Source: Oculina patagonica (taxonomy: Eukaryota). Taken from it: a stretch of 64,000 bases of DNA. The translations under genes were made by a program, and so were the position numbers. Location: positions 5,332,001-5,396,000 of the forward strand of contig NC_135762.1 of the NCBI RefSeq assembly GCF_052425735.1. Direction: 5' to 3'. The notes under the pieces were generated by a model. That model worked only from the letters and a program-made list of their open reading frames with translations, did no database searches and had not been told where the DNA came from. This document shows, piece by piece, positions 29,627-50,094 of the stretch (the first letter of the stretch is position 1; every line of letters begins with the position of its first letter).

Positions 29627-32600
29627 ATGTCAGCCTTAACAGCAAATAACTCGCCATTTCATCTTCTCCTCCATGATGTCGGAAAGGAACTAAAGCTTAG
29701 CGATGTTCGTTACATGAAATATCTTCTACAAGGACACATTAATAAGGAGACATTAGAGCATCTCGATTCGGGACAGGAGCTCACGGAACTGCTCAGAAAA
29801 AGGGGCTTGGTGTCCGAAAAGAAACTCGCGTTTATGAGAAAACTTCTGGTAGAAGCCAAGTGTTTAAAGCAAGTCAACTTAGTGGACGAGTTCAGGGAGA
29901 AATTCACTTCAGTCACAATTATTGGTAAGTAATAAAACTTAATTGCCGTTCATCAATTGTGCGCGTACTTGATTTGTACCCTAGTGATTCACAAGGCTGG
30001 TTAACTTGATCCTACAGAATCAGTGCAACCTTTTTTTCTTCGCATTTTGTATCTGTTTTACAAGCCTGTATCACATGTGGATTTTTTTGTAGTGATTTTG
30101 TTTAGTTCATGTTTAATAAACATGAATTTCAATCAAAGAAGCCGGTGTTGCCAATGCATCACTTGACTTCCAAGCAAGAAAGGATCAAATCAAAATATTA
30201 ATTGCCCAATGATCATTTGATTTTTGGTTCTAAGAATCTAATGTGCAGCACTAAGACAATTCGCAAGTTAATTATAGTCCGACTGGCATCATATTGATGG
30301 TGTAAGGAAACTGAAATTTAATTTTCAACACTTAAAATGCTTGTTATATTAATTCGTGACTACCAATGTAATCTCGCTCAGACCAGTTAAGTGTTATGTT
30401 ATGTAGTAACACTGCAATAATCTTTTTTTCGTGCTTAGCCGAAGCCAAAATATGTTTAACACTACTTTGGCATGTTTTATTTGTTGTTATGTTGTTTGGA
30501 CTGAATTTACTTGATAGTAAATGAATTAAATCGTACGCAAAACTAGTTCAATCCTTGGAAACCAAGTTGCACAGAAAATTAAAGTGAGCTAGAGCGAATT
30601 GTACGAACTATAAATAAATATAATCTCGTGTAACATCGATTAACTCACGACGTCTCCGCTCGTTATATTTTTCTCTCGTCTGGCGCCATCTACCGCTGGT
30701 TTTGTGTGGGTGTATTTATGAGCGCTTTTGTTTGGGGATTAATAAGTTTACTTACGAGGACCTTCTAATCACTTACCGTCAATTGCAAAATTAGAAATGA
30801 TTTTTCTATCCTTCCAATCGACTTTGCACCCGACTTTTTAATTACTTGCAACTTGGTTCTCTTTTAAGACCTGGCCAAACGGTAACGCCAGCGGGCGCAA
30901 GTAATCGCACGTTGAGCTTGCGTACAGACTTGCGTTGGCTGGCCAAACGGTTAAAAACATGCGTTGACTTGCGTACAAATTTGATCTCGACCAAAGTCAA
31001 CGCAAGTCAACGCAAGTGCACGCAAGTCAACTTGCGCCCATTTGCGTCTCCGTTTGGCCAGGCCTTAAAACCCTGACCAAACAGCAACGCAAGTGGACGC
31101 AAGATGACTGGCGTGCACTTGCGTCTACTTGCGTCTCCGTTTAGCCAGGACTTGCGTGCGCTTGCGTTGACTTCATGTTGACTTGCGTACACTTGCGTTG
31201 ACTTGCGTTGACTTGCGTTCACTTTGGCCGTTTGGCCACCCATCGTAAGTCAACGCCTTTTTTGCAGCTTACTTCAAATACTGAATTGCACCTCGTAGCA
31301 TTTTAAATGATTTTTTGCAAACTTGCGTACACTTGCGACTGAACATGCGTGTCCGTTTGGTTACCCAAAGCAAGTCTACGCAAGTTGAACTTGCGACTAC
31401 TTGCGTCCACTTGCGTTTCCATTACACCAGTTCTTTAAAGTACGAAAGGGTTTCAATTTCATTATATAGTTGTACAAAAAAAGTCGTACCATCATTAACT
31501 AAGACTCTGTCCCATTCCTTTCTTTTTAGGTGAGCGGCAGCAGAGCGAGCGAGCCTCAAGATTGAACAACAGGCGTGAGACTCTACTGCGCATGATTGAG
31601 AGCGTGGAAAATGAAATTCGAACATGCGAGGACGCCGAGACAGAAATCACCAATCAGATTAAGGAATGTGAAGTGCAAATTCAGGCAAACAATGAGAATC
31701 TTGTCATTGTCGAGGAAACTATTCAGAATTTGAAAAACAACATTGTCGAATACGAGACCAAGATAGAATCGTTTGAGAGGAAACTGGAAACGGTTCGATT
31801 CTTCATGAAAAAGCGGCAAGTGGAGATGGATAAGATCAAGCAAAAACTCGACGAAAACCAAAGTAGTGCGTCGGTCAAGCGAGAATTGAAGGAGAAGCAA
31901 GAAGAACACGAAAAGACGAAAAAAGAAGAAGACGAGCTTATCGCGAAGCATCAGAACGCCTTGGACATGATTAGGACAACGCATGTCGAAATCAGACACA
32001 AGACTCAAGATATCATTGTGGTAGAAGATAACATTCACGACTTGCTGATGCAGATACGGCAACTGAAGCAGGGCACGAGGAAAAATCAGCGCACTTCAGC
32101 CGAGTTACAAGAGAAACTGGAAAATCTGTCTCTTGAACTTGAAGATACGAGGCGTTTGAAACCGCTGACGCCTTTCTCAAGACCAAGAAGTCAGTTTTCT
32201 TTAAATGGTAACCATGGTAACATCTCGAACGAGCCACACATTGCAAGGAGGCTGGAGTACAAGGTAGGGCCTTATAGGGAGGGGCGTAGTTCTCCATGGG
32301 CACATTTAGCGCATGTTGTGTGCCTTTTATTCACGTTTAATTCTATTACCTCTCTAGCTGTTCTTGTCACTGTACACAAGATAGAAAAGATGAGCGTTTA
32401 TTCGTTTTTCTCTCGATGGAATCGCTTTGAAGATTTTTCTATTCTTTAAACATTATTGCAAAGAATAACCTATGGATGTTGTCCTTCAGTAGCATGTTCA
32501 ATAAAAATGTTAAAAGTTCAACTGAGGCCTTACACTACTGTGTTAAAAAGTTTTAAAAAGTTTTAAGATCCAAGCTTTCGCCGATCTACGGCATCATCAG

Positions 32601-35600
32601 GGATAATAAGAAATATTCCGCGCGAGGCTTATATACAGATGTAAAATAAAACGCGAGAAAAGCGAAAGAATGTGGGCGGTAAATGTAAATGCTAAATAAT
32701 AAGATACACATATGAATAAAGATGAAAATGTGGTCTAACGAGCGAGTGTCAAAGTACAAAGAGTCTCTAGATATGTTAAAATAAGTATTCGAATAACAAG
32801 TCCGCGAATTCACTGCATTCTTCTCGTGAGTTGAGGGCAGGTTTGTAGTTCCGTATGTAAAAAGCTTCAAACAGTCGTAGATTTGCGGGGTCGTTTTCTA
32901 GTACAATGGTCTTGATTTCGATGCCTTTGTGGACTTTGTTTTGGCACTTTGAAATGTGTTTCTTCACGGAGGAATTGTAATTGTTCAGGTGTTCTCTTAC
33001 TCGATCGTGGATAAAGCGTGTAGTGCTCCCGATGTAGTATTGGTTGCAATTGTTACACGTGATTTGGTAAACAGCGTTGCGTAATAAGCACAATTTGGTG
33101 TTGGAGACAGGGCAGTAAGGCAGTTGGCCCTCGTGCATGTCCGTTCCGTGTGAATTCGCGGACTTGTTATTCTAATACTTAGGGACTGGTCAATAAGTAC
33201 CAGGGGGGGGGGGGGGGGGTGGTCCGGAGCAATTGGAAAAGTGGTGGCTTGAAAAATTGTGACCCACCCCTTTCTTCTGGCTCAAAACTGACTGACCCAC
33301 CCCTGATAGGGGATTGAAAATTACATGACCCACCCCCTTTGCTCAAAACGTTCATTATTCTGTAAGGGGTTGGAGGTTTTTGATTTGATATCGGCCTTTA
33401 AAGTGTGATTCCATACATACACCACCCTAATTTTCCTGATGGACACTGCTGGTTCCGGGTATACGACTTTTTCCATTTCTTAGCACACCAAAGAGGGAAA
33501 AATTTGGTATAGTCTTTTTTAAGTTTTCCACATATTTGTGTGCTAAGTCCATGAAAATTTAGACACAAACATATGCGAAAACTGGAACAGTACGTAACAT
33601 TAATTCATAAACAATTATTCAAAAAAATACAGAAATTGATAACAGAAACTATCTACAACCACTGTCAATAATAATATTCATAATTGCAAAATGTTTGAGA
33701 AAAGAGTTTACTGGTGAAAGCCAAAAGCACAGAGTGAATCTACGGAGGCTGAAGACAGACAGGCAAAACTGTAATCACAAGTCATCTAGGGGGGTCAGGG
33801 GGCATGCTCCCCCGGGAAATTTTTATATTTGGGCCTCCTGAAATCGCTAGAAAATCATTTAAAACTGCTCACTTCAAGAAATTTATCAAATTATACCGAT
33901 AAAAATAAGATGACCCACCCCCTTGTGTAGATCAAAACTACATAACCCACCCCTTTTCGAGGGCTCAAAAACTGATGACCCACCCCCTTTCTGCTCCGGC
34001 CCACCCCCCTCTACTTATAGACCAGTCCCCTTATTTTAACATATCTAGAGACTCTTTGTACTTTGACACTCGCTCGTTAGACCACATTTTCATCTTTATT
34101 CATATGTGTATCTAATTATTTAGCATTTACATTTACCGCCCACATTCTCGCTTTTCTCACGTTTTATTTTACATCTGTATATAAGCCTCGCGCGGAATAT
34201 TTCTTATTATCCCTGATGATGCCGTAGATCGGCGAAAGCTTGGATCTTAAAAATTTTTAAAACTTTTTAACACAGTAGTGTAAGGCCTCAGTTGAACTTT
34301 TAACATTTTTATTATTGCAAAGATATATTACTAAGAATTTTTTGAAATTTTTACTGATGTATTATTTGTTTTCCCTTTACCCGGCACAGTTTAGTGAAGA
34401 AAACTAATATGCTTCCTTATCACCTTGATAATATAATGTGAATATTTTTTCTGTTCCTGAAAGGTTCTTGACTATTGCGAGATCTCAGAACGAGAGTCAA
34501 CTGTGATTGGTCGAAAAGGAAAGCGCGCTTTTCCTACACAGTTCCAGTGCCCCACCAGTGTGGCAGTCGATAGAGGACTGGGAATTGTTTACGTTGCTGA
34601 TTATGGCAACGTGCGCATTCAAATCTTGGACGTGAATGGTAACATGGCGCGGGAACCACTCGTTTTAGGCGGGAAATGTCGGCCATGCGCCTTGGCGGTT
34701 AGTTTGCGAGGAGACCTGGTGATGACTGACTCCCAGATTTTACGGGTGTTTAACAAAAAGGGTAAGTTGAATTCTATGTATAAGTTGTTACGATCATTAA
34801 AATCAAACAAGTGGATTTGCATTTGATATTCTCGCTTCATGCAATTGCACTAGCCGCTTGAAACGAGCATACGGGTTAATACCACACGTTCGAAATTGAA
34901 ACCAATTTAATTTCTTGGACATGAGTGGCTGACATTATCATCATCGTCATCATCATCATCATTATCACCATCATTGTTATCTAAAAGGGTTTAAAAATGT
35001 TTTCAAACTCGGAGCGCAAATAAAATTTAAAAGCGTGAAATATTTCGTCTGATATCATCCAGACTTCATCAGTCACTGAGGTGGTGTTTTCTAAGATGAA
35101 TGTTAAGAAGACATTTCACTGCCTCGGGGGAGTTAAAATTCTGTCATAAATTGGAGCTAATTCAAAACCATTGTCTCTATTTAACAAAGGTTTTCTGAGT
35201 TTTATCTCAATGGCCTCTTTTACCCGGCGTTTAAAGGTGTTGATTTCGGTGGCTAACACTTTTGTCTTGCTTGTGTCTACCGAGTGGCCCTCCAGTCGAC
35301 AATGTTCATGAATGGCTGACGAGTTCCTCGACTGATGTTCTTTCATTCTGGTTTCCAGTAAACGGGACGTTTCGCCAACGTACTCCTTGTTGCACTGTTC
35401 ACATTGAACCTGGTACACAGTTCCGCATTTCTTTAGATTGGACGTTTTGTCTTTGACATGTACCAATTGCGACCTCAGGGAATTTACGGGTTTATGAATA
35501 AGTGTGACCTCGTGTGACTTAAACGCTCTTTGAAGGCGTTCAGAAATTCCTTTGATGTATGGCGCTGAAGCGTAGATTTTCTTCTCGTTTTCGGGCTCTT

Positions 35601-38600
35601 TCGTTCCAGACTTGGAATGTGGTATTGTTAGCATCCAATCTGGGTAGTTGTTTACTTTCAAAGCTTGTTTCACGTGTTGGGCTTCTCTTGTTTTGTCCTC
35701 TCCTCGGTAACCAAGGTCTGGGCTCGCAGCATCAGGGTGTTAACTACAGCTCTTTTGTGTTGAAGATGATGATTTGAGTGGAAGTTCAGGTACTGATCCG
35801 TGTGCGTAGGTTTACGGTACACGGAGATCTTGGTAGAACCATCTTGGTTTACGTGTACACAGGTGTCAAGGAACGGGATTTTACCCTCCTTTTCTTTTTC
35901 CGAAGTGAACTGGATGTGCTGATCAATCGAGTTCAAGTGATCAGAGAAAGAATCGACAGCATGTTCGTGAATCTTGGCCATCGTGTCGTCAACATATCGG
36001 TACCACATAGTTGGCGGGGTCGGGGCGGTGTCCAGTGCTCTACTCTCAAACTGTTCCATGTAGAGATTAGCCACTATGGGAGAAATTGGGGACCCCATCG
36101 CAGCTCCTTGTTTCTGTTTGTAGAATTCATGCTGGTATGTGAAGTAGGTACTCGAAAGGCACATCTCAAGTAATGTGGATAATTGTGTGATATCCAGAGG
36201 GCATCTATCCGGCAGGCTACTGTCACCTTCCAGTTTCGCTTTGGTAACTGAGATGGCTTCATTAATCGGGATGCTAGTAAACAATGCAGAAACATCATAT
36301 GAAACAAGTTTCTGTCCAGGAGGTACCTCAAGCTCTGCAATCTTGTTGACAAAGTCTTCACTGTTGACGATGTGATGACCGTTGAGGCCAACAAGAGGTT
36401 TCATAATCTTAGCAAGGAACTTGGCAGTGTCGTACATCACGCTACCAATGCTGGAGACTATTGGTCGTAACGGGGCGTCCTTCTTGTGACGACACGATGG
36501 CCAAGATTCACGAACATGCTGTCGATTCTTTCTCTGATCACTTGAACTCGATTGATCAGCACATCCAGTTCACTTCGGAACAAGAAAAGGAGGGTAAAAT
36601 CCCGTTCCTTGACACCTGTGTACACGTAAACCAAGATGGTTCTACCAAGATCTCCGTGTACCGTAAACCTACGCACACGGATCAGTACCTGAACTTCCAC
36701 TCAAATCATCATCTTCAACACAAAAGAGCTGTAGTTAACACCCTGATGCTGCGAGCCCAGACCTTGGTTACCGAGGAGAGGACAAAACAAGAGAAGCCCA
36801 ACACGTGAAACAAGCTTTGAAAGTAAACAACTACCCAGATTGGATGCTAACAATACCACATTCCAAGTCTGGAACGAAAGAGCCCGAAAACGAGAAGAAA
36901 ATCTACGCTTTAGCGCCATACATCAAAGGAATTTCTGAACGCCTTCAAAGAGCGTTTAAGTCACACGAGGTCACACTTATTCATAAACCCGTAAATTCCC
37001 TGAGGTCGCAATTGGTACATGTCAAAGACAAAACGTCCAATCTAAAGAAATGCGGAACTGTGTACCAGGTTCAATGTGAACAGTGCAACAAGGAGTACGT
37101 TGGCGAAACGTCCCGTTTACTGGAAACCAGAATGAAAGAACATCAGTCGAGGAACTCGTCAGCCATTCATGAACATTGTCGACTGGAGGGCCACTCGGTA
37201 GACACAAGCAAGACAAAAGTGTTAGCCACCGAAATCAACACCTTTAAACGCCGGGTAAAAGAGGCCATTGAGATAAAACTCAGAAAACCTTTGTTAAATA
37301 GAGACAATGGTTTTGAATTAGCTCCAATTTATGACAGAATTTTAACTCCCCCGAGGCAGTGAAATGTCTTCTTAACATTCATCTTAGAAAACACCACCTC
37401 AGTGACTGATGAAGTCTGGATGATATCAGACGAAATATTTCACGCTTTTAAATTTTATTTGCGCTCCGAGTTTGAAAACATTTTTAAACCCTTTTAACTA
37501 TGTATCCGGAGCAGGAAACCAATATTTTCAATTGTATCATTGTTATCGTCATCATTATCGTTATCATAATCACTACCATTATTAACAATCCTTAAGATGC
37601 TAAATGGAGTAAAAAGCATTAACAAGATCTCTCCGTTCCTGCTGGTCCTTGGCAAGTGGTGAAGCTTGCTCCATATCTAGTCAATGTTTAGAGCCGAAGT
37701 TCTGTCTCAGCGGTCCTTCGCCAAGTGGAATTGGTACGGCCCCTTATTTTTTACCTGCTGGTGTGCTTTACAGAGAAACTTTTTATAAAATTGGAATGTC
37801 ATGCATAATTGCATGCTCGTAAAATTCTCTGCTAAAACTTTAATCTAACTAGGTATATATCTTAATTTTCTTTGTTTTTCTTCAGGTGAACTGCTTCGTC
37901 CAATCTTACCCGTTTACAGCAAGAACGACAAACGACCCGAGCTCAGCGCAGTGGCTTTTGACATTCTGGGAAATATCTACGCCGCTGACAAAGCGAACCA
38001 CAGAATACAAAAGTTTACATTCGATGGGAACTTTCTTTGCTTCATTGGAGGACTTCACGACCTACATTGCCCCATGGGGATTGTTGTCAAGAAAAACGGT
38101 GACGTCATCGTCACTGAATACGAAAATCACCGACTCAAAATCTTCAGCCAAGAGAACCTAGGGGAGAGTAAAATCATCGGCGCAAGGGGGGTAGGGGCAG
38201 GCAAGTTTGCCTGCCCAAGAGGGGTGGCGCTTGATCACAATGACAATATTTTGGTGGCAGATAGTCAGAATCACAGAATTCAAGTGGTTTCTTCGATAGG
38301 CGAACCTCTTGGGACATTCGGAATGATTGGTTCAGATCCCGGATGTCTTGATACCCCGTATGACGTTGTCATGGATGCATCCGGGAACATTATTGTAGCT
38401 GATGCTAAGAATCATAGATTGCAGGTTTTTACGAGGCTTATCCCTGTATATGCTGAGCCTGCGATGTACGATGAAGAGTACGAAGCTGCGGTTGCGACAG
38501 TTGATGGGGAAGGACTGGAAATGAATAAAGATGAAATTGCGGCGGACAATTTGGACGACGGGGTTCAACATGGGATTAACGATGTCGTTGAAACCAATGA

Positions 38601-38775
38601 AACCCCCATGAAGGTCACCATCCAGGAAAACAACGAAGAAGAACAAAATCGAAATACAGGGACTGATAAATTGCAAGTTTTAGAGGAGTCTAACAACACA
38701 GGAATTGCAAACAGTGAAGAATCTACAAAACAAGTTTCCAAAGACACCCAAGAGATGGAAATTAATAATAATTAA
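29627..38775 (+). CDS. Death effector domain + long coiled coil + NHL-repeat protein with acidic tail, 4 exons, about 739 aa
   Basis: Exons 29627-29924, 31530-32263, 34464-34761, 37886-38775 (GT-AG, phases 1/0/1 consistent). DED-like [24 protein letters not shown]...LVDEF. NHL repeats [68 protein letters not shown]. Confidence 0.85.
30868..31425. mobile_element. Two abutting MITEs rich in ACTTGCGT/ACGCAAGT repeats
   Basis: TTAA-GACCTGGCCAAACGG...CCGTTTGGCCAGGCC-TTAA followed by a second related copy. Confidence 0.65.
32568..32604 (-). ncRNA. Minimal type I hammerhead ribozyme motif (PLE1, left arm)
   Basis: Reverse complement of 34209-34245. Confidence 0.8.
33182..34029. mobile_element. PIF/Harbinger-like MITE nested in the PLE1 right arm
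   Basis: TIR GGGACTGGTC(A/T)ATAAGTA with (C)TTA duplication. The left arm shows the uninterrupted site. Confidence 0.85.
34209..34245 (+). ncRNA. Minimal type I hammerhead ribozyme motif (PLE1, right arm)
   Basis: ATCC-CTGATGA-T-GCCG-TAGAT-CGGC-GAA-AGCT-T-GGAT: stem I ATCC/GGAT, stem II GCCG/CGGC, palindromic AGCT in place of stem III. Confidence 0.8.
35035..35076 (-). ncRNA. Minimal type I hammerhead ribozyme motif (PLE2, left arm)
   Basis: Reverse complement of 37402-37443. Confidence 0.8.
35116..36488 (-). pseudogene. PLE reverse transcriptase + GIY-YIG endonuclease, 5'-truncated and frameshifted
   Basis: ORFs 35670-36440 and 35116-35673 join through a 1-nt frameshift at LVTEE. Confidence 0.9.
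36487..37362 (+). pseudogene. PLE RT C-terminal part + GIY-YIG endonuclease, same frameshift
   Basis: ORFs 36461-36808 and 36805-37362. The copy begins at the DD of YVDD. Confidence 0.9.
37402..37443 (+). ncRNA. Minimal type I hammerhead ribozyme motif (PLE2, right arm)
   Basis: GTGA-CTGATGA-A-GTCTG-GATGATAT-CAGAC-GAA-ATAT-T-TCAC: stem I GTGA/TCAC, stem II GTCTG/CAGAC, palindromic ATAT. Confidence 0.8.
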
Positions 38776-39030
38776 CAATTATTCACCAAAGTGGAGGTAA
38801 ATATCCACCACATTCACTGACGCTGAGGTGAATAATTGTTTTAGTATATACTACACAAGATGAATATCTAGCGGACCAAAACATCACTTTCGGTAAAAAA
38901 AAAAGCGACACACGAAGGCAGTTTGTTTCTCTTTAGCTGCTCGGAGGTGAATAAAACATTGCTAATCACCTCCGAGTTAACCAATCAGCGCACGCGAAAA
39001 GCACTATTCACTTGTGTGGTATATACTAAC
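38768..39030. mobile_element. Short non-autonomous repeat abutting the stop codon of the DED-NHL gene
   Basis: AACAATTATTCACCAAAGTGG...GGTGAATAATTGTT followed by TTAGTATATACTACACAAG...CTTGTGTGGTATATACTAA. A related inverted copy lies at about 15310-15850. Confidence 0.6.
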
Positions 39031-39577
39031 AACATATGACGAAATCAGAATGAGATTGAAAATCGGAGGCGTTTATTAGAAAAACTGACAATTATGTTAT
39101 TGCTGGAATTGTTTTTGACAGGTTCAAGTCATGCTGTAATTTTCAGACTCTCTAGTTCTCGGTACTGGATGATGAGTCCAAAGAAACGCTTTCAATGAAT
39201 TGTAAGTAACCTGGGTTTGACATTATAATGTGCCTCGTGTTTACTACAGAGTGGAACCGTTAAATTTATAACTCTGAAAATCCTCCGCGTTTTACTTGGG
39301 CTGAAAATCTATGTATTTCTCGAGACGACTCTTTTTTCAGTTAGAAATAACTAGCTCAGATTCGCCAGAATAAACCTGCATTTTATGGACTACATTTTGT
39401 TTCCTTGGGAAAACTTCGTTATGATACAAACAATAAATAATTACCATAAGTCCGTGTTGTTAATTGTGTGCTTCCTTTCCGATGCGCTCATGTATTTTAC
39501 GGAATCTGTTTCTCCTGTTATAAGTTCCCCGCGAAAGCTTGTTTTCACTTCATTTTTTACTAGTTTTGCTATGGCGA

Positions 39578-41820
39578 TCACTCTGCTTCATTTTCAACCG
39601 CGTCTTTATTTTCTGATTCATTCTCCGTGATTGCCAGCCATGGTTCTTGTTGTAGCTGTTCTACTGTTATTCTCTCGGCTAAATTCCACTGTAGCATTTT
39701 ATGTATGACAGCTTTGACTGGGTCAGGAACGTTAACCTTAGAAGGGAAATTGACCCGGCGATGGACTTGTTGTAGAAGACTGCGTAAATTGGAGTCATCG
39801 AACGGCAATCGGCCACAAATCATGGTGTAAAGAATCACACCCATGCTCCACACGTCCGCGAGCGTTGCGTCATAAGCAATACCTACATAGATGACAATAA
39901 ATATGGGTTATTGACTATAAGCGTGAGGATCAAGATGGTGGGATAGTAGATAAGTTCTTTTCTTTTGCGTGTTTATGGACCTAGACAAAGTCGAACAAGC
40001 TTGGTCAATAAACAAGCGAGTAAGACCCTGCATTATACTAAGTTAACCTAAACAGGGTCTTACATCAATGGTTCAGTTAGCACAAATTTAGACTATTTAT
40101 GTAAGGTTCTAACTAGGTTCGTATTTTCGGAAGAAAAATTTACGTTGCTGTAAATAGAGTTTTTAGTGGTATTCAGCCTTTTCCTTTTATTTATATTTTT
40201 GATTGTATCAATAACGTTTTGATTTTCAACTTGGGCATTTCCATTGCAACTGGAGTGATAAGAATCCTAGGTGTCTCCAAAGAGAATCCAGAATGTCGAC
40301 TTCCCTTATTTCACTTAAAGTAAACATTTTAAATCAATTTGAGAAAATAAGAAACTATTTCCAAATTTAAGGCTAAACAGGTGCTCGGTAAAGATGGTGT
40401 CTAACTGGCAAATTTTAGCCTAAAAGGTTTCTAAAAAATTAGGTTATACTCGCAGGTTTTGTCGTGATTGGATTAAACAATGAAGTGAATGGATTTAGTT
40501 GACTGACAAGTTTTAAGATTGAAAATATTTTTATTTGCGCAAAATTTCAGCGCGAGAGCCAGCGGCAACAACAACAAATTTGCGGGAAAATTGCGGGCAA
40601 TCCCGAACGGCTATGATAGGCCTAGACTGCAAAATAGTCGTTTTTTCTCTAAAGTCGTTGGAAAAGCGCTTATCGAAGGCGTTCACTGCCCACAGTCTCA
40701 CAGTTTTGACATTGGCTCCAGACCTCTCGCTCTCGTTCGAAGACCGAGCGTGTTCGCAAAAGATACGACTGTTTTGCAGTCTATGATAGGCCCATCTTAG
40801 CCTGCGTAGCAGGCGCCTGTGTAGTTTTTTTAAACGCGTTTAAAAAAGAGCGCGATCGCGAGAAACCTAGGCCCAACTTTCTTACGTTGCTTTCATAATT
40901 TTGTGTTTTAACACGTGATTTAATAGTGTATACCGGTAATTGGTGGGAGCATAATTTAGCTTTAATCACAGTATCCCCCTGCAAACACTTCACAAGAACC
41001 ACACCCAAGTCAAATTACGCGGTAGTCCTATATATCTTAGGCGCGCTTTAAGAATCCTTTGCATCATATCTAGATTCTTTTTAAAAAATAAATCTAAGCC
41101 TTTATCTAGAAAGAAGCCACTACGTTTCCTACCTTTAAGTATTTCCGGAGGCGCATAAGCATAAGAGCCACAATAAGTATGGCAAAGTTTTCGCTTTCCA
41201 GTAGCTGAGGTCAAATTATCGCGCGCAAATCCAAAGTCAGATATAACAATATTCTTTTCTTTGTCCAGCAGCAGATTCTCGCACTTGAGATCTCGGTGCA
41301 CCACATCTTGGCCGTGAACGTAAGTGATTCCAACAACGAGCTGCTGGAACAAATTTTTCGCTGTTGCTTCGGGCATTGCCCCGTACTTCCTGATATACTC
41401 TAAAAGATCGCCACTTTCTGCTAGGTCAGTGATAATGTACATCCTGGTGTTAGTCTCTATAACCTCGATCAGTGAAATGACATGAGGGTGGCGAAGCCTT
41501 TTGAGGACTTTGATCTCACGAGGCAGAAATTTCGATAAAAAATCCTCCGGTGCCTTCTTTTTGCATATGATTTTGACGGCAACATACTTTTTGTGTCTTC
41601 TTGAGTATGCTTTCCTGACAACCGCGTACGATCCTTTCCCAAGAATGTCTCCAAGCTGATAGCCATACCGCTCAAGCAACGCAGTCACACCAGCTAGTGG
41701 GTTTTCTGTGCGACTTGTATTTGAATCTGGTTTTTCAGACTTCTCCGAGTTCGAAACAGCATCTGATTTGCGTTTGGAATCTTGCCCCGCCTCAGGGCTT
41801 TGATCTGGATTGTCAGACAT
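39578..41820 (-). CDS. TSSK: Testis-specific serine/threonine kinase (TSSK1/2-like), 2 exons
   Basis: Exons 41820-41133 and 39882-39578. Motifs LGKGSYAVV, KKAPEDFLSKFLPREI, HRDLKCENLLL, DFGFAR, TYCGSYAYAPPEILKGIAYD...DVWSMGVILYTMICGRLPFDDSN. Confidence 0.92.
40623..40783. mobile_element. MITE, 9-bp TSD TGATAGGCC
   Basis: TIR TAGACTGCAAAA(T/C)AGTCGT. TSD at 40614-40622 and 40784-40792. Confidence 0.88.
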
Positions 41821-42261
41821 TTACGATTTACCATTTGAGCAGGTCTGACTTTAGGGAGACATTCTACATCCCTCCTCACTTGATCTTATTTGCAATTCTC
41901 AAAGATAATTGTCTCCCAATTGTTCCATTTATTATAGTTATGACGTCACACTTATTAATCAAAAGTTTATTAACAAATTAATTAATCGATTATCAGAAAA
42001 CTAATAAACAGTGACGTGAAATCCTTTGAGGAAAATACAAACAATATACAATACAAACCAGAAATCTATTTTCAAAGTTTTCTTTTTTCCCGCAAAATTC
42101 TGCTGTTTTAGTTAAGCTCGTAACCATAGAAACCAGTCATGCGCCATGCACGCCGAGCCACCGATCTGACTGCTTTCGTTGCAATCAAGAAAGACGAGGG
42201 AAAAGTTGAAGGCAAGAAAAAGACTCAAAAACATTCTAATAGGTCCAAGAAAAGCTGTAAA
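41821..42261. promoter_or_regulatory. Bidirectional promoter for TSSK and CCDC169 with a CRE and an RFX X-box-like site
   Basis: 441 bp between divergent ATGs. TGACGTCA at 41941-41948 and GTAACCATAGAAAC at 42120-42133. Confidence 0.55.
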
Positions 42262-45200
42262 ATGAGCACGCCTCGCGGCTCTAAGCCGCAACAGCAGCAA
42301 CAAGCGCCAAGAACGGAGTTGGACTACGAAATCGAACGACTGAAAGCGGAGATTCAACAGGAACGTCAAATGAAGTAAGTGTGATCATGATCTAAGTCAT
42401 GGACTTTGATTTCTTAGACTTAAGCTTTCTCTACCCTCTCTTAACAATTTGTTACACGAAGCTACATTTCGTGATTATCTCTGACTTTTATTTTTGCTTT
42501 TAAATTATGATTAAAACTCACTTAGCAACTGTTAATGAACTTGCCAGCCCAGGGAATCTCCTTTGGATGTTGTCAGTGTGGATTTCAATCAGACGGAACC
42601 TGTTTATCGTGGGTTCGAAATCAATAGAAAACCTAAAACCCTTAAAATAAAACAGAATGAAAATAACTATAACTATATGTAGATTGATAGAATGGCTCGT
42701 ATTTTTGTGTTTCTTGGGGAGACATTCTTCGTTCCGTTTATAAATTAAACAACCTGCAAATTTGTTTCTAATCAAGGGAAATGTTGGAACAGTCATCCGT
42801 TGAGCTTGAGAATACAATCACTGATTTGGAAGAGAAAAACGACCATGTTGAAGATGAAGGTAACAGTTTACTTGTTTTTATTATGAAACCCTTGGTGAAT
42901 CTACTCTGATTTACTGCACCTGGTTGTTGATTTATCCAGTGGATAGCATTATCTGCTCTTTTGAAAACCAAGTTTACATTAGGTAGAAATGGGTTACAAA
43001 ATGATTGGAAGTGGTAATAAGTCCTTGACAACTACGGAAAGTCCTCAAACTACACAGAAGACTAAAACTCAATTAATGAAGGGGGAAAAAACTACAAATT
43101 GGGAACAGAAAAAATTATCCCAAAAACCATAATTTTCTCTTTCTTAAGCTGGCGACGCACTTGGCAATTTTATTCGCCGATTGTGGCGAATTTGATTGCC
43201 AGCGATCCGTGAATAAAATCGCAGATGTCTGACATGCCAGGTATCAGCAATTTATAAAATCGCAATTGCTGCACTGGGCACACTTGGCAATTTTTGTGAT
43301 CGGTGATCGGCGAATAAAATCGCCAAGTGTGTCGCCGACTTTACACCATACATCATTCTTAATCTGATCAGCTAATAAACTACACGTGACAAATCACAGT
43401 TTATTATTAAAGTTCAATTACAATAAATAATTAGTGCTCAGACTCTAGAGAAGCCAATAAAACAGATGAGGCCCTGTCAGGGTTTTAGGATTATGGATTA
43501 TTAGCGGTTTTTAGAGAAGGGATATGGATTATTGGTCTGTAAATTAAAGAATTATAGATTATTTGCATTGTATTTAAAAACTAGTGATACCTATCGGTAG
43601 AAATGCCAACGAGTACAACGGGACGCTTTATGATTTTGGTCGATCAATAAACATTGCGCGTTTTCTTTGAAAATCTTGAATGCTTATGGAATAAAATGCG
43701 ATTTTATGAAGGCTAACAAAAAGTTCCAAAATAATACCAAAGTAGTGAAGATTTAGTGAGAAATCTTGTAAACTTCATGCTATTTGCGAGTTTCAAGCCA
43801 TTGTTGTCCGATGCCGCTATTTTGGAAAGGTTTCTGCTGTTTTAAAGTCCTATAGGTCTTAATCAAAGTGGCTATGAGCCACTGAACACGAAAAATAAAT
43901 TACGAAACAAAAAGCAAATTTTTACAAAGATTTGCCAAAACAAAGCATTTCAAACTTTCCACACTGCAGTTGAATCCATTCAGCACATAGGTATTAAAAA
44001 AATTGAGGTTTTAAAAGGTAAAAGCCTGGTCGGACAAGTTTGTGGCCAAAGATGGAACAAGTTTATTTTATTATTCCGAGAATAATTCATCACGCGCAAT
44101 GCGTGATGTCTCAAATATCACGTTGAATTGTTGTTGTTGAGACACTGCAAATTGCGTTCGGGCAACCAGCTTTTAGGAAAATTAAAGGCCCTGTTTCCCG
44201 AGGAAAAAAACGCCGAAGTATCCAGGAAAAAATGTAGTATAGGGAATTTATTTTATAAATTCGAGAAACGAAATAAAACTCTCTTCTGATTGATAAAATC
44301 TGTGTTGTTTACTTTGCCAGACCTAACTTAATTACGCATGCAAATTTGTATGACTTCGAAATTTTCGAAGCTTTGGAAATCTTGAAGCTTTGGAATGCAT
44401 TTCTTACCTTCATCTTAAATGAAATTAAATTCTAAACAAAGTTTAATTCAAGTTTCTTTCGTATTTCAATCTCTAGTTCGGGAATTTTGGCTTTTTGAAG
44501 CGAACAGATTTGAAACCTCTTTGTTATCTGAGACGCATCGTGTCTGGGAATTTTAGTTGCCAATAACTCATGCATGTGCTAAACAAATTAGTAGCGCGCT
44601 GATTGGCCAAACTACAACAAAGTGTGCACGTGCTGAATTGTGTCGTCACGATCTACCTTACATTACATTACTTACATTTCTCGACATTTGGAGTGTTTCT
44701 GAGATTTTTTTCGCATGTACAAATCTTCTCGCGGCTCTATGATCTGCCGCCTCGTCAGGCCTTCTGGTCTTCCAGAAGGCCTGACTCGTTGGCAATTAGG
44801 GATTATTATTGGTCGTTGTCTCTAGGAATAATATGTTTTTATAATATAAAATTGGAATACAGAATATTTCAATAATTAAAGATAGAAACTTCACGGACAG
44901 TTACTCAGAGTTTCACGCACGAAGCGATCATCAGACTGTGCCGTTAGATGCGGTGAAATACAATTTAAACTACGTTCATGGAGGGCGGTTGGAACCTAGT
45001 TTTGAAACTATGTTCAAGAACCATAAATTTTCCTTCAAACATCGCAAGCATTCACACGACACTGTGCTGTCAAAGTACATTTGGGACCTGAAAGACAACA
45101 ACACCGAATTTTCGATCAAGTGGTCCATTGTCACGAGAGCAAGCGCTTACAGGGGAAACCCGTCACGCTGTAATTTGTGTCTGACGGAGAAGCTCTGCAT

Positions 45201-48200
45201 ACTATCAGCTGACAGTTCTACCCTCTTGAACAAAAGATCTGAGCTTGTTACCAAGTGCAGGCACGAAAACAAGTACTACGCGGCCAATCAGAGACAGGAT
45301 CGTTCCAACCGCCCTCCATGAACGTAGTTTAAATTGTATTTCACCGCATCTAACGGCACAGTCTGATGATCGCTTCGTGCGTGAAACTCTGAGTAACTGT
45401 CCGTGAAGTTTCTATCTTTAATTATTGTATTCCGCTCTGCATGTATTTGCATCGAGCACTTCTACGATTGTGTGAAACCTTTTACATTTTTCTTTGTTTA
45501 ATACAGAATATTTCCAAATTTTCACCAAGGATTATGGATTAGTCAGACCCTCCCCTAACTGGACCTCACATATGCTTCTTACCTTTGCCTGTCCATTCTG
45601 TTCCCCACAGTAAAGGTTTCTTTCTTCCAATGTTACATATCGTTTCGTTTTGCAACTACATATACATATCGTAAATGATCGATTAAGCCCCACTACTCAA
45701 ATAAGCACTGCTCTCAAGCACTGCACCTTTTCAAAAAATCATTTAATAAGTGCTGCTCTCAAATAGCCGCGGAGTTAGTTTGGGTAGTTACATACTAGTG
45801 ACTGTGAAACTGTGTTCATGTTACCTCTTGTATTTAAACAGCAATACTTTCACTATTAAAAAGGGTGTTCTATTACCTCTTGTATTTCATTTGAAACACA
45901 ATTTTATAGTAAATTGTGCATATCTAGTACAACCTCACTTAAAAAACTCATTAATAATTAATAAAGAAAATACAATTTAAGAAATTAATGTTTAATGAGT
46001 GTCTTTATATCTGATAAAGACACGGCTAAACTTTACGTCCAATTTTCAAGGCCAAAATAACCCCAAATCTAAATATTAGTGCAAGAATGAGATGATCGAC
46101 ATCAGAAGATGCCGTTCAATAAATTCGCAGTTCGTGTTTTATCAAGTCTAAAACACTCGGCTGCGCCTCGTGTTTTAAACTTGATAAAACACTGCTGCTC
46201 ATTTATTAAACATAACTTAATTACCGGTAGTTGAAATAAGCACCGCTCTGGAATAAGCGGCACTCTCGAATAAGCACCAAACTTTTAACAGGGAAAATTA
46301 ATAAAATAAGCACCGTGGCACTTAATCAATCATTTACTGCATGTGTAGGTCATGTACATAGCAGTTTTGCATATAATCATTTAACTGTTGTCTTAGATAA
46401 TGAATGGAAGACGCGGTTTGAGACCCAACAGGAAATGAACAGTCAACTTGAAAAACAGGTTGTGTTACTGAGGGACAAACTGGGACAGCTTAAGATTCCT
46501 TCTCGAGATGGTAAGCTTATTATCTTATGACAACACCTTTTGTTCAAATTCCTGAGGTGGTGGCCTAGAAGAGCTTAGACTGTACAACTCAATAAATACC
46601 TTATAATAGGAAATTAACGATGTTATTAACATGAATTTCAAAAATTCATGTTAATTTTATAACAAGTAAATTTTGTTTGCATTGTAAAAATGCTTTGTTA
46701 TATTCCTATAACAAGGTATTGTTTGCATGTTAGGTTTATTAATGATTAGTAGAAACTCAGTCGTGTTCTATTGGAAATCCGCGAATCTGATTGGTTCTCC
46801 CATTGATTTCTATTCACCGATAGAAAACAGTCGCGCACGCGTTGTTCTTTAAAGGGTGAATTTTTCTTGATTTTAGGCTTAAAAGTACATAAAATTGTAG
46901 GTTTTGAACTGCAATTCTTTAGAGTTTCTACTGCGCCTCGTTGACTATTCGCTCATAGAAAACTCGGGCTGGTAGTCTAATTGTTAAATAGAATAATTTT
47001 GTAGAGTGCTTAACACTGTTTATAATGATCTAGAGTAGTAAGATTTTAATTCATTGTTTTATTGCGACTGTGCTGTTTCGTGTGATCAAAGAATGACCAC
47101 ACTCATCAGGCATTATCAGGATTCGTTGATATTGCCTGATGAGTGTGGAAAATTTCAATATATATTTTTTCTAATAAATTTGGTACTTGACCATGTTTCC
47201 TTTTTTTATCCAGGAAAACCAAGTAATCACCTCAAGACATTTAATGGTTTGTCTGATGTAAGTTCTACAACTTAATTGACGTATTGCTTTCTGAACTTTT
47301 TACTTAACACAATATTAACGTGTTTAAAATATTGTACAACCATATTTCACACAAAATATTTATTTCTTTGTAACCATCAGGCAGAAATCAGAAAACTAAT
47401 GAGACAATTGGAAAGGGATAAAATAGAACTTCAGGGTCAGCTGCGAGACTTGGAATGGCGTTTAGACAATGAATCTAAGGTAAGTACATAATCTAGTACT
47501 GTTTCTTTCTACAAGTTCATAAATGTAACATTTGTGTTTGTGGTGCAGTCTCATTCACATTTATTGGGAGGCACTAATGGCTAGCTCAACTTTGGATCCA
47601 ACAGGTTCAAGCACTGGCTGGGGCCCGGGGGGGGGGGGGGCACTTCCTATAAATGGGCTTATGGGGATGTGCCGCTGGATGGGGTCGCATTTTCACGACT
47701 GGACTGACTATAATGGGGTCGCCATTTCAAGCATTTTTTATAGGGTGACTAGAATGGGGTCACACTTTTCAGGGATTTTGAGAGTACGAAAATCTGGCAA
47801 GTTGTGATTTCTGAACGGAAATATTCGCCGAAAAAATGTTACCGTATTTATTGCTGTTGTTCAATATTTGACAAACAGCTGCCAGAAAGTGACTAAGTTG
47901 GGGTCGTAAAAATTAAATGTACCCAAAAGTGACTAAGATGGGGTCTATAGTTGGCCATAGAATAAGACTATATTGGGGTAGGGGTTCTGAGAGGCCAGCG
48001 GCACATACCCAACAAAAATTTATCCAAGTACCCCCCGGGGGGCTGGGGTCTTGTGTTCTTGGGCAAGACACTTAAATCTGATTTACTGAACCTGCAATGA
48101 ACCAACATCCCATCCAGGGGGAATGACAGTCCATATTTCCTAGTTGCTTTAATGATTACAAAAACCAGGCTAAGGTTCAGTTGAATGGGCAACTTTAGCC

Positions 48201-50094
48201 TTTAGTGCATATTTTGTGGTTCAATTTTACCCTTGCTACAATTGGCTATTTTGCTTTGTGCTTTTAAACTTGTCTGTAACTCTGACTCCAGTTTCATTAT
48301 TCAACAGAATCATGCAGTCGCAAGCTTAACCAGTTGTTATAAATATTTTATGAATAATACTAAAATAAGAAAAAAATAATAGACAGTATTATTCATCTTG
48401 TTATTTAGGCATATCACAAGCTTAGTGAAGAACGGAAGAAATACATGACTGAGCTAGATGAGGTAAATATTGTGCTGAGCCTGTTTTCAACTACCTTATT
48501 ACATGAAATTTTCGCGACACGTTAATTTCGCGATTTTGAGGTGCACATATTTCGCGACACTTAAATTTTACGATTTTGCGAAAATTTTGTATTTTTCATC
48601 ACTTTAATTTCGCGTTTTTGAGTGAGACGCAATTTACATTTTCTTGGCAATATATTTTGATATGCCTTTGAATTATATAAAACGACTTCATCGAAGGAAC
48701 AATAAAGTCAAAATTAACAAAAACGCAGGGGGGACTTAATCTCGGCAATAGCAACAACAGAGCAGTTCTCACAATGTCTACAAGTGAGTCAATTGACGAC
48801 AACATCTATTTACATTGATTACTGATATATGCGAGTCACTGAAACTTTGCGTCATGTTATGTTCGCGACACTTATTGTTCGCGTCACTTTATTTTCGCAA
48901 ATTTTTTAGAATCGCGAAATTCGCGAAATTTAAGTGTTGCGAAAATTTCATGCAATAAGGTACTGTACATTCCATCTAATGTCTTTTTTTGCAAAGTTTT
49001 TTATTTATACAATAATCTCCTTAATTTATAAAAATGGATAGATGTGAAGTCTTATTTTGCAATCAATATTTTTCATGTATAATCAGGATTGGAAATAACA
49101 GCCTGTGATCGGTAATTACCGATCAAATTTACCAGCCAAAAATTTAACAAAATTTAATAAATTACAATAAATATATATTAAAATGGTGAAATCTTTCTTT
49201 GCACCTTCACAAAAAATCACTTAAAAGTAATAGTATCAATCTGTTTTTCCTTACTTCCAACCCTGTATAATGTTTGTATCTCAGACTGCTGCATTCATTG
49301 ATGAATCAAAAACAAAGACAAGAAGGGCACTTAACGAAGCTCAGCGAGAAAATGAGGCTCAGTTGGAGACAGCAAGATTAAGGTTGGTCTGTACTCTTAC
49401 TATGCTGTGATACTGCTTTGATTGTGCTTGATTTAAAACAATACAAGTGTATTCTGAGGCATGAAATGGGAGTACTGAAAAGTATTTGATAAGCAGTAAA
49501 AACTCATTTGACACATCCAATATGTTTCACCAAAACAATTTGGCATTTTGACCAATGTCACTGGTCGTCTTCATCTTGAATAAGAATAAAATTGTGGGTG
49601 GGGAGGGGGGTGTATCCCCATATGAAATGAACAGGAATCAAACATTTGAATCTATTTCCAACTAGGCGGCTGAAACTTTCTCGAACTCCACTTCCATGTT
49701 TACTGTACTTCAGGCGACATAAACACTTAATGATTATTTTCCATTGTGCTGTTCCAGAAAATGTCTAATGAAGGTCACTAGAAATTCTGAGGGGATGGGG
49801 GCTCTCAAAAGCAAATTTTTTAAAGAAAAGTATGGCGCATAACTGGAATTTCCAGAGAGGTGGGGGGATTCAAACCAAAGCTTTGGATATTTTCTGGAAC
49901 AACACATTTCCTAAGTCACTCATTTTGCATTTTCCAGGCACTCTAACCAGTTTGGCCTGCCAGACAATCAGAGGATCATTGATCCTAAGAAAGGCCCAGT
50001 GAAAAAGGTGGCAGCAGTACGTAAACTGCCAAAGCTGGACAGCTCAGGATCAGGGGGGAGTAAATCACCAGGCAACAGTCCAAGAAACAGCTAG
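42262..50094 (+). CDS. CCDC169: Coiled-coil domain-containing protein 169 homolog, 8 exons
   Basis: Exons 42262-42374, 42777-42859, 46397-46510, 47214-47257, 47381-47479, 48409-48462, 49285-49382, 49938-50094. Motifs NEWKTRFETQQEMNSQLEKQV, QLRDLEWRLDNESKAYHK, DPKKGPVKK...LPKL. Confidence 0.82.
44893..44944 (-). ncRNA. Type I hammerhead-like motif (PLE3, left arm)
   Basis: Reverse complement of 45353-45404. Confidence 0.7.
45353..45404 (+). ncRNA. Type I hammerhead-like motif (PLE3, right arm)
   Basis: ACGG(C)ACAGT-CTGATGA-T-CGC-TTCGT-GCG-T-GAA-ACTC-T-GAGT-A-ACTGTCCGT: GUA cleavage triplet, with a U-U pair at the base of stem II. Confidence 0.7.
47060..47115 (-). ncRNA. Free-standing canonical type I hammerhead ribozyme motif
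   Basis: Minus strand reads TAATGC-CTGATGA-GTGTGGTCA-TTCTT-TGATCACAC-GAAAC-AGCACA-GTC-GCAATA: full core, 9-bp stem II, GUC triplet. Confidence 0.8.
47624..48040. mobile_element. CCCGGGG-terminus MITE nested in a SINE
   Basis: CCCGGGGGGG..CACTT ... AAGTACCCCCCGGG splits a SINE (about 47570-48200). Related elements at 54211-54514 and 62762-63184. Confidence 0.65.
48494..48960. mobile_element. TA-TSD MITE with TTTCGCG repeats
   Basis: TIR CCTTATT(A/G)CATGAAATTTTCGC(G/A)ACAC with TA flanks. A related element lies at about 55965-56441. Confidence 0.8.

Follow-up and report, generated by a model that had tools for sequence, protein, structure and literature searches.

The 64-kb stretch of Oculina patagonica DNA considered here (contig NC_135762.1, positions 5,332,001 to 5,396,000; hereafter the window, with positions counted from its first letter) contains, between positions 32452 and 47148, four insertions of Penelope-like elements (PLEs). 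In all probability they represent four independent integrations of four PLE families, each in the form of the standard double-primed product of PLE integration. The hammerhead ribozyme (HHR) motifs that they bring with them are cargo of the elements, and not devices of the host genes. The inverted-copy architecture has already been described (Craig 2021, PMC8557442; Frangieh 2024, PMC11167929), and the typical PLE layout consists of an inverted 5'-truncated copy and a one-sided 30-40-bp tail (Craig et al. 2021, PMC8557442).

Three of the insertions were read directly as 5'-truncated PLEs: insertion 1 (family A) at 32452-34323, insertion 2 (family B) at 34970-37548, and insertion 3 (family C) at 44858-45514. 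A preliminary description of this DNA had listed the same three, with target site duplications (TSDs) of 13, 12 and 15 bp, inverted arms, a truncated body and a one-sided tail, and our reading of the sequence matches its figures. The parts of the three insertions are as follows.

32452-32464: left TSD of insertion 1, attattgcaaaga, 13 bp, found again as an identical 13-mer at 34311-34323
32465-32499, minus strand: tail of insertion 1, 35 nt, the terminal 3' stretch of the long copy, on the left side only
32500-33149, minus strand: long 5'-truncated copy of family A in insertion 1, with the arm at 32500-32815 and the unique centre at 32816-33149
32568-32604, minus strand: left-arm minimal HHR (min-HHR) motif of insertion 1, with 26 exact genomic copies
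33150-34313, plus strand: short inverted arm of insertion 1, 316 nt (33150-33181 plus 34030-34313), broken by a nested element
33182-34029: nested element of 848 bp with terminal inverted repeats (TIRs) GGGACTGGTC[A/T]ATAAGTA, flanked by CTTA/TTA
34209-34245, plus strand: right-arm HHR motif of insertion 1, in the short inverted arm
34311-34323: right TSD of insertion 1
34970-34981: left TSD of insertion 2, atcattgttatc, 12 bp, within a degenerate (ATC)n tract
34982-36486, minus strand: long tail-less copy of insertion 2, 1505 nt, with the C-terminal part of the reverse transcriptase (RT) and the GIY-YIG endonuclease
35035-35076, minus strand: left-arm HHR motif of insertion 2, in the long copy
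36487-37496, plus strand: short arm of insertion 2, 1010 nt, with an HHR motif at 37402-37443
37497-37536, plus strand: tail of insertion 2, 39-40 nt, one nucleotide being common to tail and TSD
37537-37548: right TSD of insertion 2
44858-44872: left TSD of insertion 3, aatacagaatatttc, 15 bp
44873-44995, minus strand: short tail-less inverted arm of insertion 3, with an HHR motif at 44897-44939
44996-45427, plus strand: long copy of insertion 3, with an HHR motif at 45358-45400 and the C-terminal two thirds of a putative GIY-YIG endonuclease of Hydra-clade type
45428-45499, plus strand: tail of insertion 3, 72 nt, on the right side only
45500-45514: right TSD of insertion 3

In each of these insertions the unique centre extends the reading frame of one arm, and therefore the unit consists of a long copy and a shorter one, both 5'-truncated, which meet head to head and have their 3' ends outward. 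An inverted-repeat scan of window positions 31000-48500 delimits the arms. Those of insertion 2 (34982-35991 and 36487-37496) are 1010 nt long, lie 495 nt apart and differ by two mismatches, at 36581 and 36911, while the 126-nt arms of insertion 3 (44870-44995 and 45302-45427) are 100% complementary. In insertion 1 the raw scan pairs 32500-32665/32632-32785 with 34030-34313; when the nested element, which entered the right arm after insertion 1 had formed, is taken out, 308 of 320 alignment columns match, and the remainder are 4 mismatches and 8 gap columns. Insertion 2 is young: family B copies differ by a median of 0.6-1.9% where compared, and its own arms are 0.2% apart.

The coding remnants point to PLEs with an endonuclease (EN+). 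The body of insertion 2 contains Pfam matches to RVT_1 (9e-9) and then, in the same reading direction, to GIY-YIG (7e-6), i.e. an RT followed by a C-terminal endonuclease, and insertion 1 retains a GIY-YIG endonuclease open reading frame (ORF) at 32776-33138 (PF01541, E 4.3e-8). The three families, called unrelated in the preliminary description, are distinct but all belong to the PLEs, and insertions 1 and 2 share 35% identity (E 3e-14) in their endonucleases. For insertion 3, neither the ORF nor its relatives have a Pfam match, BLASTP finds no match between the ORF and the insertion 1 endonuclease, and a profile search of PDB sequences with the endonuclease of this family returned nothing. 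A word search, however, collected 285 relatives of the ORF, among them one named in UniRef as a GIY-YIG domain protein and one from Oculina patagonica. Their alignment conserves the series Y-x-A...YIG...R...H...E...N, together with a CxCX5C linker and two further motifs, CxxC ahead of the conserved E and CxH following the conserved N. Judging from these motifs and from the one UniRef name, the insertion 3 product is probably a GIY-YIG endonuclease as well. Of this element the window contains no more than the endonuclease part; elsewhere in the genome the family C domain closes open frames of up to 716-724 aa. The remaining hallmarks of EN+ PLEs were also found, namely 5' truncation, inverted or tandem partial copies, a one-sided tail, a TSD, and hammerhead motifs in the 3' or terminal-repeat region.

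The fourth insertion was hidden behind what had been taken for a solo hammerhead. It comprises the following parts.

46984-47118, minus strand: fragment of a family D PLE, 80-90% identical to some 40 scored copies
47061-47114, minus strand: the 'solo' hammerhead, with G10.1-C11.1, a helix II of 9 bp, and a helix III of 2 bp capped by a 6-nt loop
47121-47148, plus strand: family D inverted arm of about 28 nt, repeating helix I and the CUGAUGAG box only

The motif is not solitary; it belongs to a micro fold-back, which is the fourth and older PLE insertion. No TSD is recognisable around the family D fragment at its age. Many genomic copies of family D are likewise arranged in pairs, either head to head or in tandem. 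An unrelated repeat (46850-46995), for which a first look at the genome gave more than 2000 candidates, adjoins the 3' side of the fragment. Four PLE events in 15 kb are denser than average, and a local insertion preference may be a factor, although we make no claim of clustering.

Near-perfect palindromes may also arise as assembly or sequencing artefacts, in particular from fold-back chimeric reads. Arms that diverge by 0-0.2% would fit such an origin, and PLE structures are known to trouble assemblies (PMC8557442). Yet a TSD of 10-16 bp frames every fold-back, the arms are unequal in length and exactly one of them is tailed, the layout is repeated at dozens of loci across many contigs, and in insertion 1 the arms have diverged and only one of them contains the nested element. 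An artefact is therefore hardly credible.

How common the fold-backs are was determined in the 529-Mb Oculina patagonica assembly. For family B, 31 loci (the window copy and 30 further loci) were studied closely and compared among natural copies only. This sample is biased to long copies, and for that reason exact copies of each family's HHR were counted as well; the censuses of families A, C and D are based on coordinates only, without reading of the sequence letters. Head-to-head fold-backs make up 18 of the 31 family B loci, the remainder being solos, tailed or tail-less. By the count of exact motifs, family B has 61 sites at 43 loci, with 18 head-to-head (-)(+) pairs (42%) and no tandem or tail-to-tail pairs. 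The 26 sites of family A fall into 19 loci, of which one is a tandem and five are head-to-head pairs, or seven when known short-arm cases are added (26-37%), and the 62 sites of family C fall into 56 loci with 6-8 such pairs (11-14%). Solo copies occupy 25 of 43 loci in family B, about 13 of 19 in family A and 50 of 56 in family C. The inverted form had been proposed to be the dominant insertion product; it is a major product, and the largest single class in family B, yet is not generally dominant.

Two side observations concern the copies counted here. Most family C copies, which are mostly 91-98% identical, consist of a tail-less piece of constant size, 352 bp (query 84-435, identity about 97%, HHR-bearing), with the same two boundaries everywhere, e.g. 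at C12:22363442-22363793 and in about 30 other places. This piece may be a short non-autonomous derivative, similar to the animal 'retrozymes', which have lately been linked to PLEs. For family B, the point L015:5084 seemed to mark the shared 5' end of a 1.83-kb unit; this was rejected, as the point is the truncation of one copy and other copies extend at least 613 nt beyond it.

Among the 17 family B fold-backs that were analysed in detail, the two arms always meet directly, and a TSD of 10-16 bp, mostly 12-14 bp, encloses the whole. The 3' ends of the arms are fixed at one of two sites, and the 5' truncation points vary: family A copies stop at query 499-505 (tail-less) or 531-536 (tailed), and family C copies at query 434-436 or 504. 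One tailed and one tail-less arm were found in each of 33 fold-backs (18 in family B, 11 in family A, 4 in family C), and no two-tailed locus was seen in family B. If the start site were chosen independently for each arm, mixed pairs would be expected in at most half of the cases. In an exploratory count over families A, B and C, the tailed arm was the shorter one in 20 fold-backs and the longer one in 8. Where the arms of a family B fold-back overlap by 1 kb or more (five cases), each arm is nearer to its partner, at 0-0.4% divergence, than to any other sampled copy, at 0.33-0.75%.

These regularities bear on two other possible origins of a fold-back, namely one priming with subsequent snap-back (hairpin) synthesis, and a later inversion or recombination that involved two independent insertions. 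Either route might account for arms that are nearly identical and abut without a spacer. Snap-back synthesis, however, predicts a common 5' point and differing 3' ends, and the reverse is observed; fixed 3' ends combined with varying 5' ends exclude it and require two primings. Two separate insertions would each have brought a TSD of their own, and a single TSD frames the whole unit. We consider both routes very improbable.

Double priming during one integration may be pictured as follows. The GIY-YIG endonuclease of the element would nick both target strands 12-15 bp apart, and the stagger would account for the TSD. Each of the resulting 3'-OH groups would prime reverse transcription near the 3' end of the element RNA, and the two 5'-truncated complementary DNAs (cDNAs) would then be joined head to head, so that both 3' ends, each with its hammerhead motif, point outward. 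If one priming begins downstream of the tail and the other upstream, exactly one arm will be tailed. The biochemical precedent is close: in the work of Frangieh et al. (2024, PMC11167929) the purified Anolis PLE protein PAc cuts both strands of the target in vitro and extends them, and the PLE tail is the stretch between two RT start sites, with no difference in start site between top and bottom strands in vitro (PMC11167929). The PAc system accounts for the outward 3' ends and for a tail that lies between two initiation sites. It differs in that no strand difference was seen in vitro, whereas in the O. patagonica genome the two arms of one insertion always differ, i.e. within one integration each of the two start sites is used once.

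The last rule can be explained if a single RNA molecule is the template of both cDNAs and is primed at one site and then at another farther downstream, from which synthesis passes through by strand displacement. We put this forward tentatively, as a possibility rather than as the expected route, because the one-tail rule holds in 33 of 33 fold-backs from three families and two clades, the tailed arm tends to be shorter (20 versus 8), and partner arms are closest relatives. If true, it would amount to an ordered, coupled double priming that was not revealed by the in vitro work.

The junctions provide some further detail. Tail-less ends of family B copies often retain the initial 1-5 nt of the tail (ACT...), which also form part of the TSD, and at tailed ends tail and TSD have the final 1-8 nt of the tail in common. 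The overlap at both ends points to microhomology between target and RNA at both priming sites. A search of the family B junctions for a target motif oriented by the side of the tail found AT-richness only. Some young family B fold-backs were themselves hit by later insertions, of 4.6 kb in L010 (G000:C13:16347800-16357790) and of 1.6 kb with a 10-bp duplication in L005; transposition therefore seems to be recent and ongoing.

The hammerhead motifs were counted over the whole window with the pattern CTGATGA-N6-30-GAAA. Seven matches were found against 1.69 expected, none of 100 shuffles reached seven, and all seven lie inside the region described here, in agreement with the number noticed at first. 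In the 529-Mb assembly the strict core pattern occurs 5935 times, as compared to 1256 for the control. Folds were read by hand and by minimum free energy (MFE) folding. The motifs of insertions 1 and 2 consist of a 4-bp helix I, the CUGAUGA box, a bulged base, a helix II of 4-5 bp and the GAAA box; a 4-nt palindrome (AGCU or AUAU) replaces the helix III hairpin and is followed by U17 and the return strand of helix I. In the left arm of insertion 1 this reads AUCC / CUGAUGA / bulged U and 4-bp helix II / GAAA / palindrome AGCU / U, then GGAU, and in the right arm of insertion 2, GUGA / CUGAUGA / bulged A and 5-bp helix II / GAAA / palindrome AUAU / U, then UCAC. The MFE fold of the insertion 1 motif yields helices I and II. 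The core boxes and these two helices were found in all four families, and in families A-C the motifs are exactly conserved in 26-62 genomic copies. In family C the pair at 10.1/11.1 is U.U, which is the norm of the family (62 exact copies versus 2 of the C variant).

The preliminary description had placed an HHR motif in each arm and had suggested a check against Rfam. At the level of core boxes and helices I and II the claim holds, but the Rfam 15 scan found none of the hammerhead families Hammerhead_1, HH9, HH10, II and 3 at the gathering score or at E<=10, only chance matches to microRNA, small nucleolar RNA and CRISPR-repeat families, and the motifs are therefore classed as min-HHR by descriptor and not as members of an Rfam family. 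By their sequence, the motifs of insertions 1 and 2 are of the published dimer-dependent min-HHR type. The min-HHRs of metazoan PLEs show no detectable cleavage as single motifs and weak cleavage as dimers (PMC4209133), and a lone sense min-HHR in an intron, as in insertions 1 and 2, would be expected to be inert.

The genes that harbor the insertions matter for what the hammerheads might do. Insertions 1 and 2 lie in the same gene, which we take to be of the DED-coiled-coil-NHL kind. The features relevant here are given below.

29627-38775, plus strand: host gene of insertions 1 and 2, with a coiled-coil exon (ORF 31562-32449) and NHL-repeat exons
34461-34760, plus strand: host exon with an NHL repeat (PF01436 NHL, 1e-6), between insertions 1 and 2, present in contig pieces
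37885-38775, plus strand: host exon with NHL repeats and the C-terminus, acceptor at 37885

The RNA evidence consists of contigs from four runs guessed to be RNA, and such contigs are blind to RNA ends, expression levels and rare variants. A GT..AG joint 34760->37885 is present in the contigs of all four runs; therefore insertion 2 is within an intron, and the spliced form occurs in each run. All insertions had been called intronic. For insertion 2 this is borne out by the spliced contigs, and for the other three it is likely from the flanking exons: insertion 1 would be located between the donor of the coiled-coil exon (probably near 32264) and the acceptor at 34461, and insertion 3 and the family D fragment within an intron of a DUF4600/CCDC169-like gene, judging from the flanking ORFs at 42139-42378, 46315-46530 and 47276-47491, the last two of which have Pfam matches. 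Contigs of other, longer family B copies occur on both strands, and family B therefore seems to be transcribed. The nested 848-bp element of insertion 1, which has 18-bp TIRs, a long G run and repeated GACCCACCCC motifs, shows very high contig depth in all four runs, and is therefore an abundant repeat similar to miniature inverted-repeat transposable elements.

The preliminary description proposed that each insertion would neutralise itself, and the corresponding reading is that of a cassette in which the sense hammerhead could cut the pre-mRNA of the host but is masked by the complementary arm in double-stranded RNA (dsRNA), which would then be diced to small interfering RNA (siRNA) or edited. 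If transcribed, the introns would indeed form perfect stems of 126 to 1010 bp, the host gene is found in spliced form, and inverted Penelope copies yield siRNA in transformed D. melanogaster (PMC3681739). However, the motifs of insertions 1 and 2 are min-HHRs without a helix III loop, of the kind that stays uncleaved as a single copy (PMC4209133), and therefore nothing needs masking. A fold-back transcript contains one sense copy, which leaves little to neutralise, and splicing removes the intron. Solo copies, which have no masking arm, are as common as fold-backs or commoner. A search of the contigs for an editing signal found transitions in both directions (in X1, A>G and T>C numbered 13 versus 9 for G>A and C>T), which are inseparable from differences between copies. 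The route from dsRNA to siRNA, moreover, has already been reported for inverted Penelope copies in Drosophila (Evgen'ev 2013, PMC3681739). The coral fold-backs share the structural premise of the effect shown in flies. Rozhkov et al. in 2010 are also said to have traced Drosophila dsRNA and siRNA to such copies. It is plausible by analogy that siRNA is made from the coral fold-backs, but neutralisation is unneeded, and we regard the cassette as improbable.

Several points weigh against the interpretation of the insertions as hammerhead-bearing products of double priming. The biochemical steps are read from sequence. The 'hammerhead' label depends on core boxes, helices I and II and the published description, as all seven motifs go unrecognised by Rfam, and in family C positions 10.1/11.1 are U.U. 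The four runs are guessed to be RNA, and the individuals from which the contigs come may be without the insertions.

Two other features of the window may be mentioned. Serine/threonine kinase-like ORFs at 39578-41820 on the minus strand (with HRDLKCEN and DFGFA) start about 320 bp from the first CCDC169-like ORF on the plus strand; this spacing points to a divergent promoter common to both. Upstream of insertion 1, a hairpin at 31000-31134, with 63-nt arms that are 84% complementary and a 9-nt loop, gives a mir-592-like hit in Rfam (E 0.0085) that is weak and falls far short of the gathering score.

As a device of host genes the arrangement is of little importance, being the normal scar of PLE integration. 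Its value is in what it records. O. patagonica contains several very young PLE families, and dozens of clean, TSD-framed fold-backs make up a natural record of PLE integration. The one-tail rule, the abutting arms and the signal of a common template limit the models that can be proposed for a poorly understood mechanism.

Compared with the min-HHR (Cervera & de la Pena 2014, PMC4209133), the motifs have the same CUGAUGA and GAAA boxes, a short palindrome instead of the helix III loop, a long helix II with a 5' bulged base, a helix I of 4-5 bp, and a position in the terminal repeat (PMC4209133). They differ in that family D has a small helix III hairpin, and is in this respect more canonical, and family C has U.U at 10.1/11.1. 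PLEs of the Hydra clade, which are present in corals and in Apostichopus, have CxCX5C, CxxC and CxH endonuclease motifs (Craig et al. 2021, PMC8557442). Family C resembles them in its endonuclease motifs, in its relatives from corals and Apostichopus japonicus, and in the HHR of the 3' region; by its endonuclease it is a candidate member of the clade, for which an RT free of an IFD or CxC domain is a further criterion.

With the canonical EN+ PLEs the insertions share an RT with a C-terminal GIY-YIG domain and internal CxxC, extensive 5' truncation, an upstream copy in inverted orientation, a tail of 30-40 bp at a single end, an HHR in the 3' or pseudo-long terminal repeat (pLTR) region, a TSD, and AT-rich or microsatellite targets. 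This layout is reportedly also credited to Evgen'ev and Arkhipova in 2005 and to Arkhipova in 2006. Nothing essential differs; the O. patagonica families are undescribed and very young, and the family C tail, at about 70 nt, is above the usual 30-40. A single tail, found 'often' according to the literature (PMC8557442), is a strict rule here, in 33 of 33 fold-backs.

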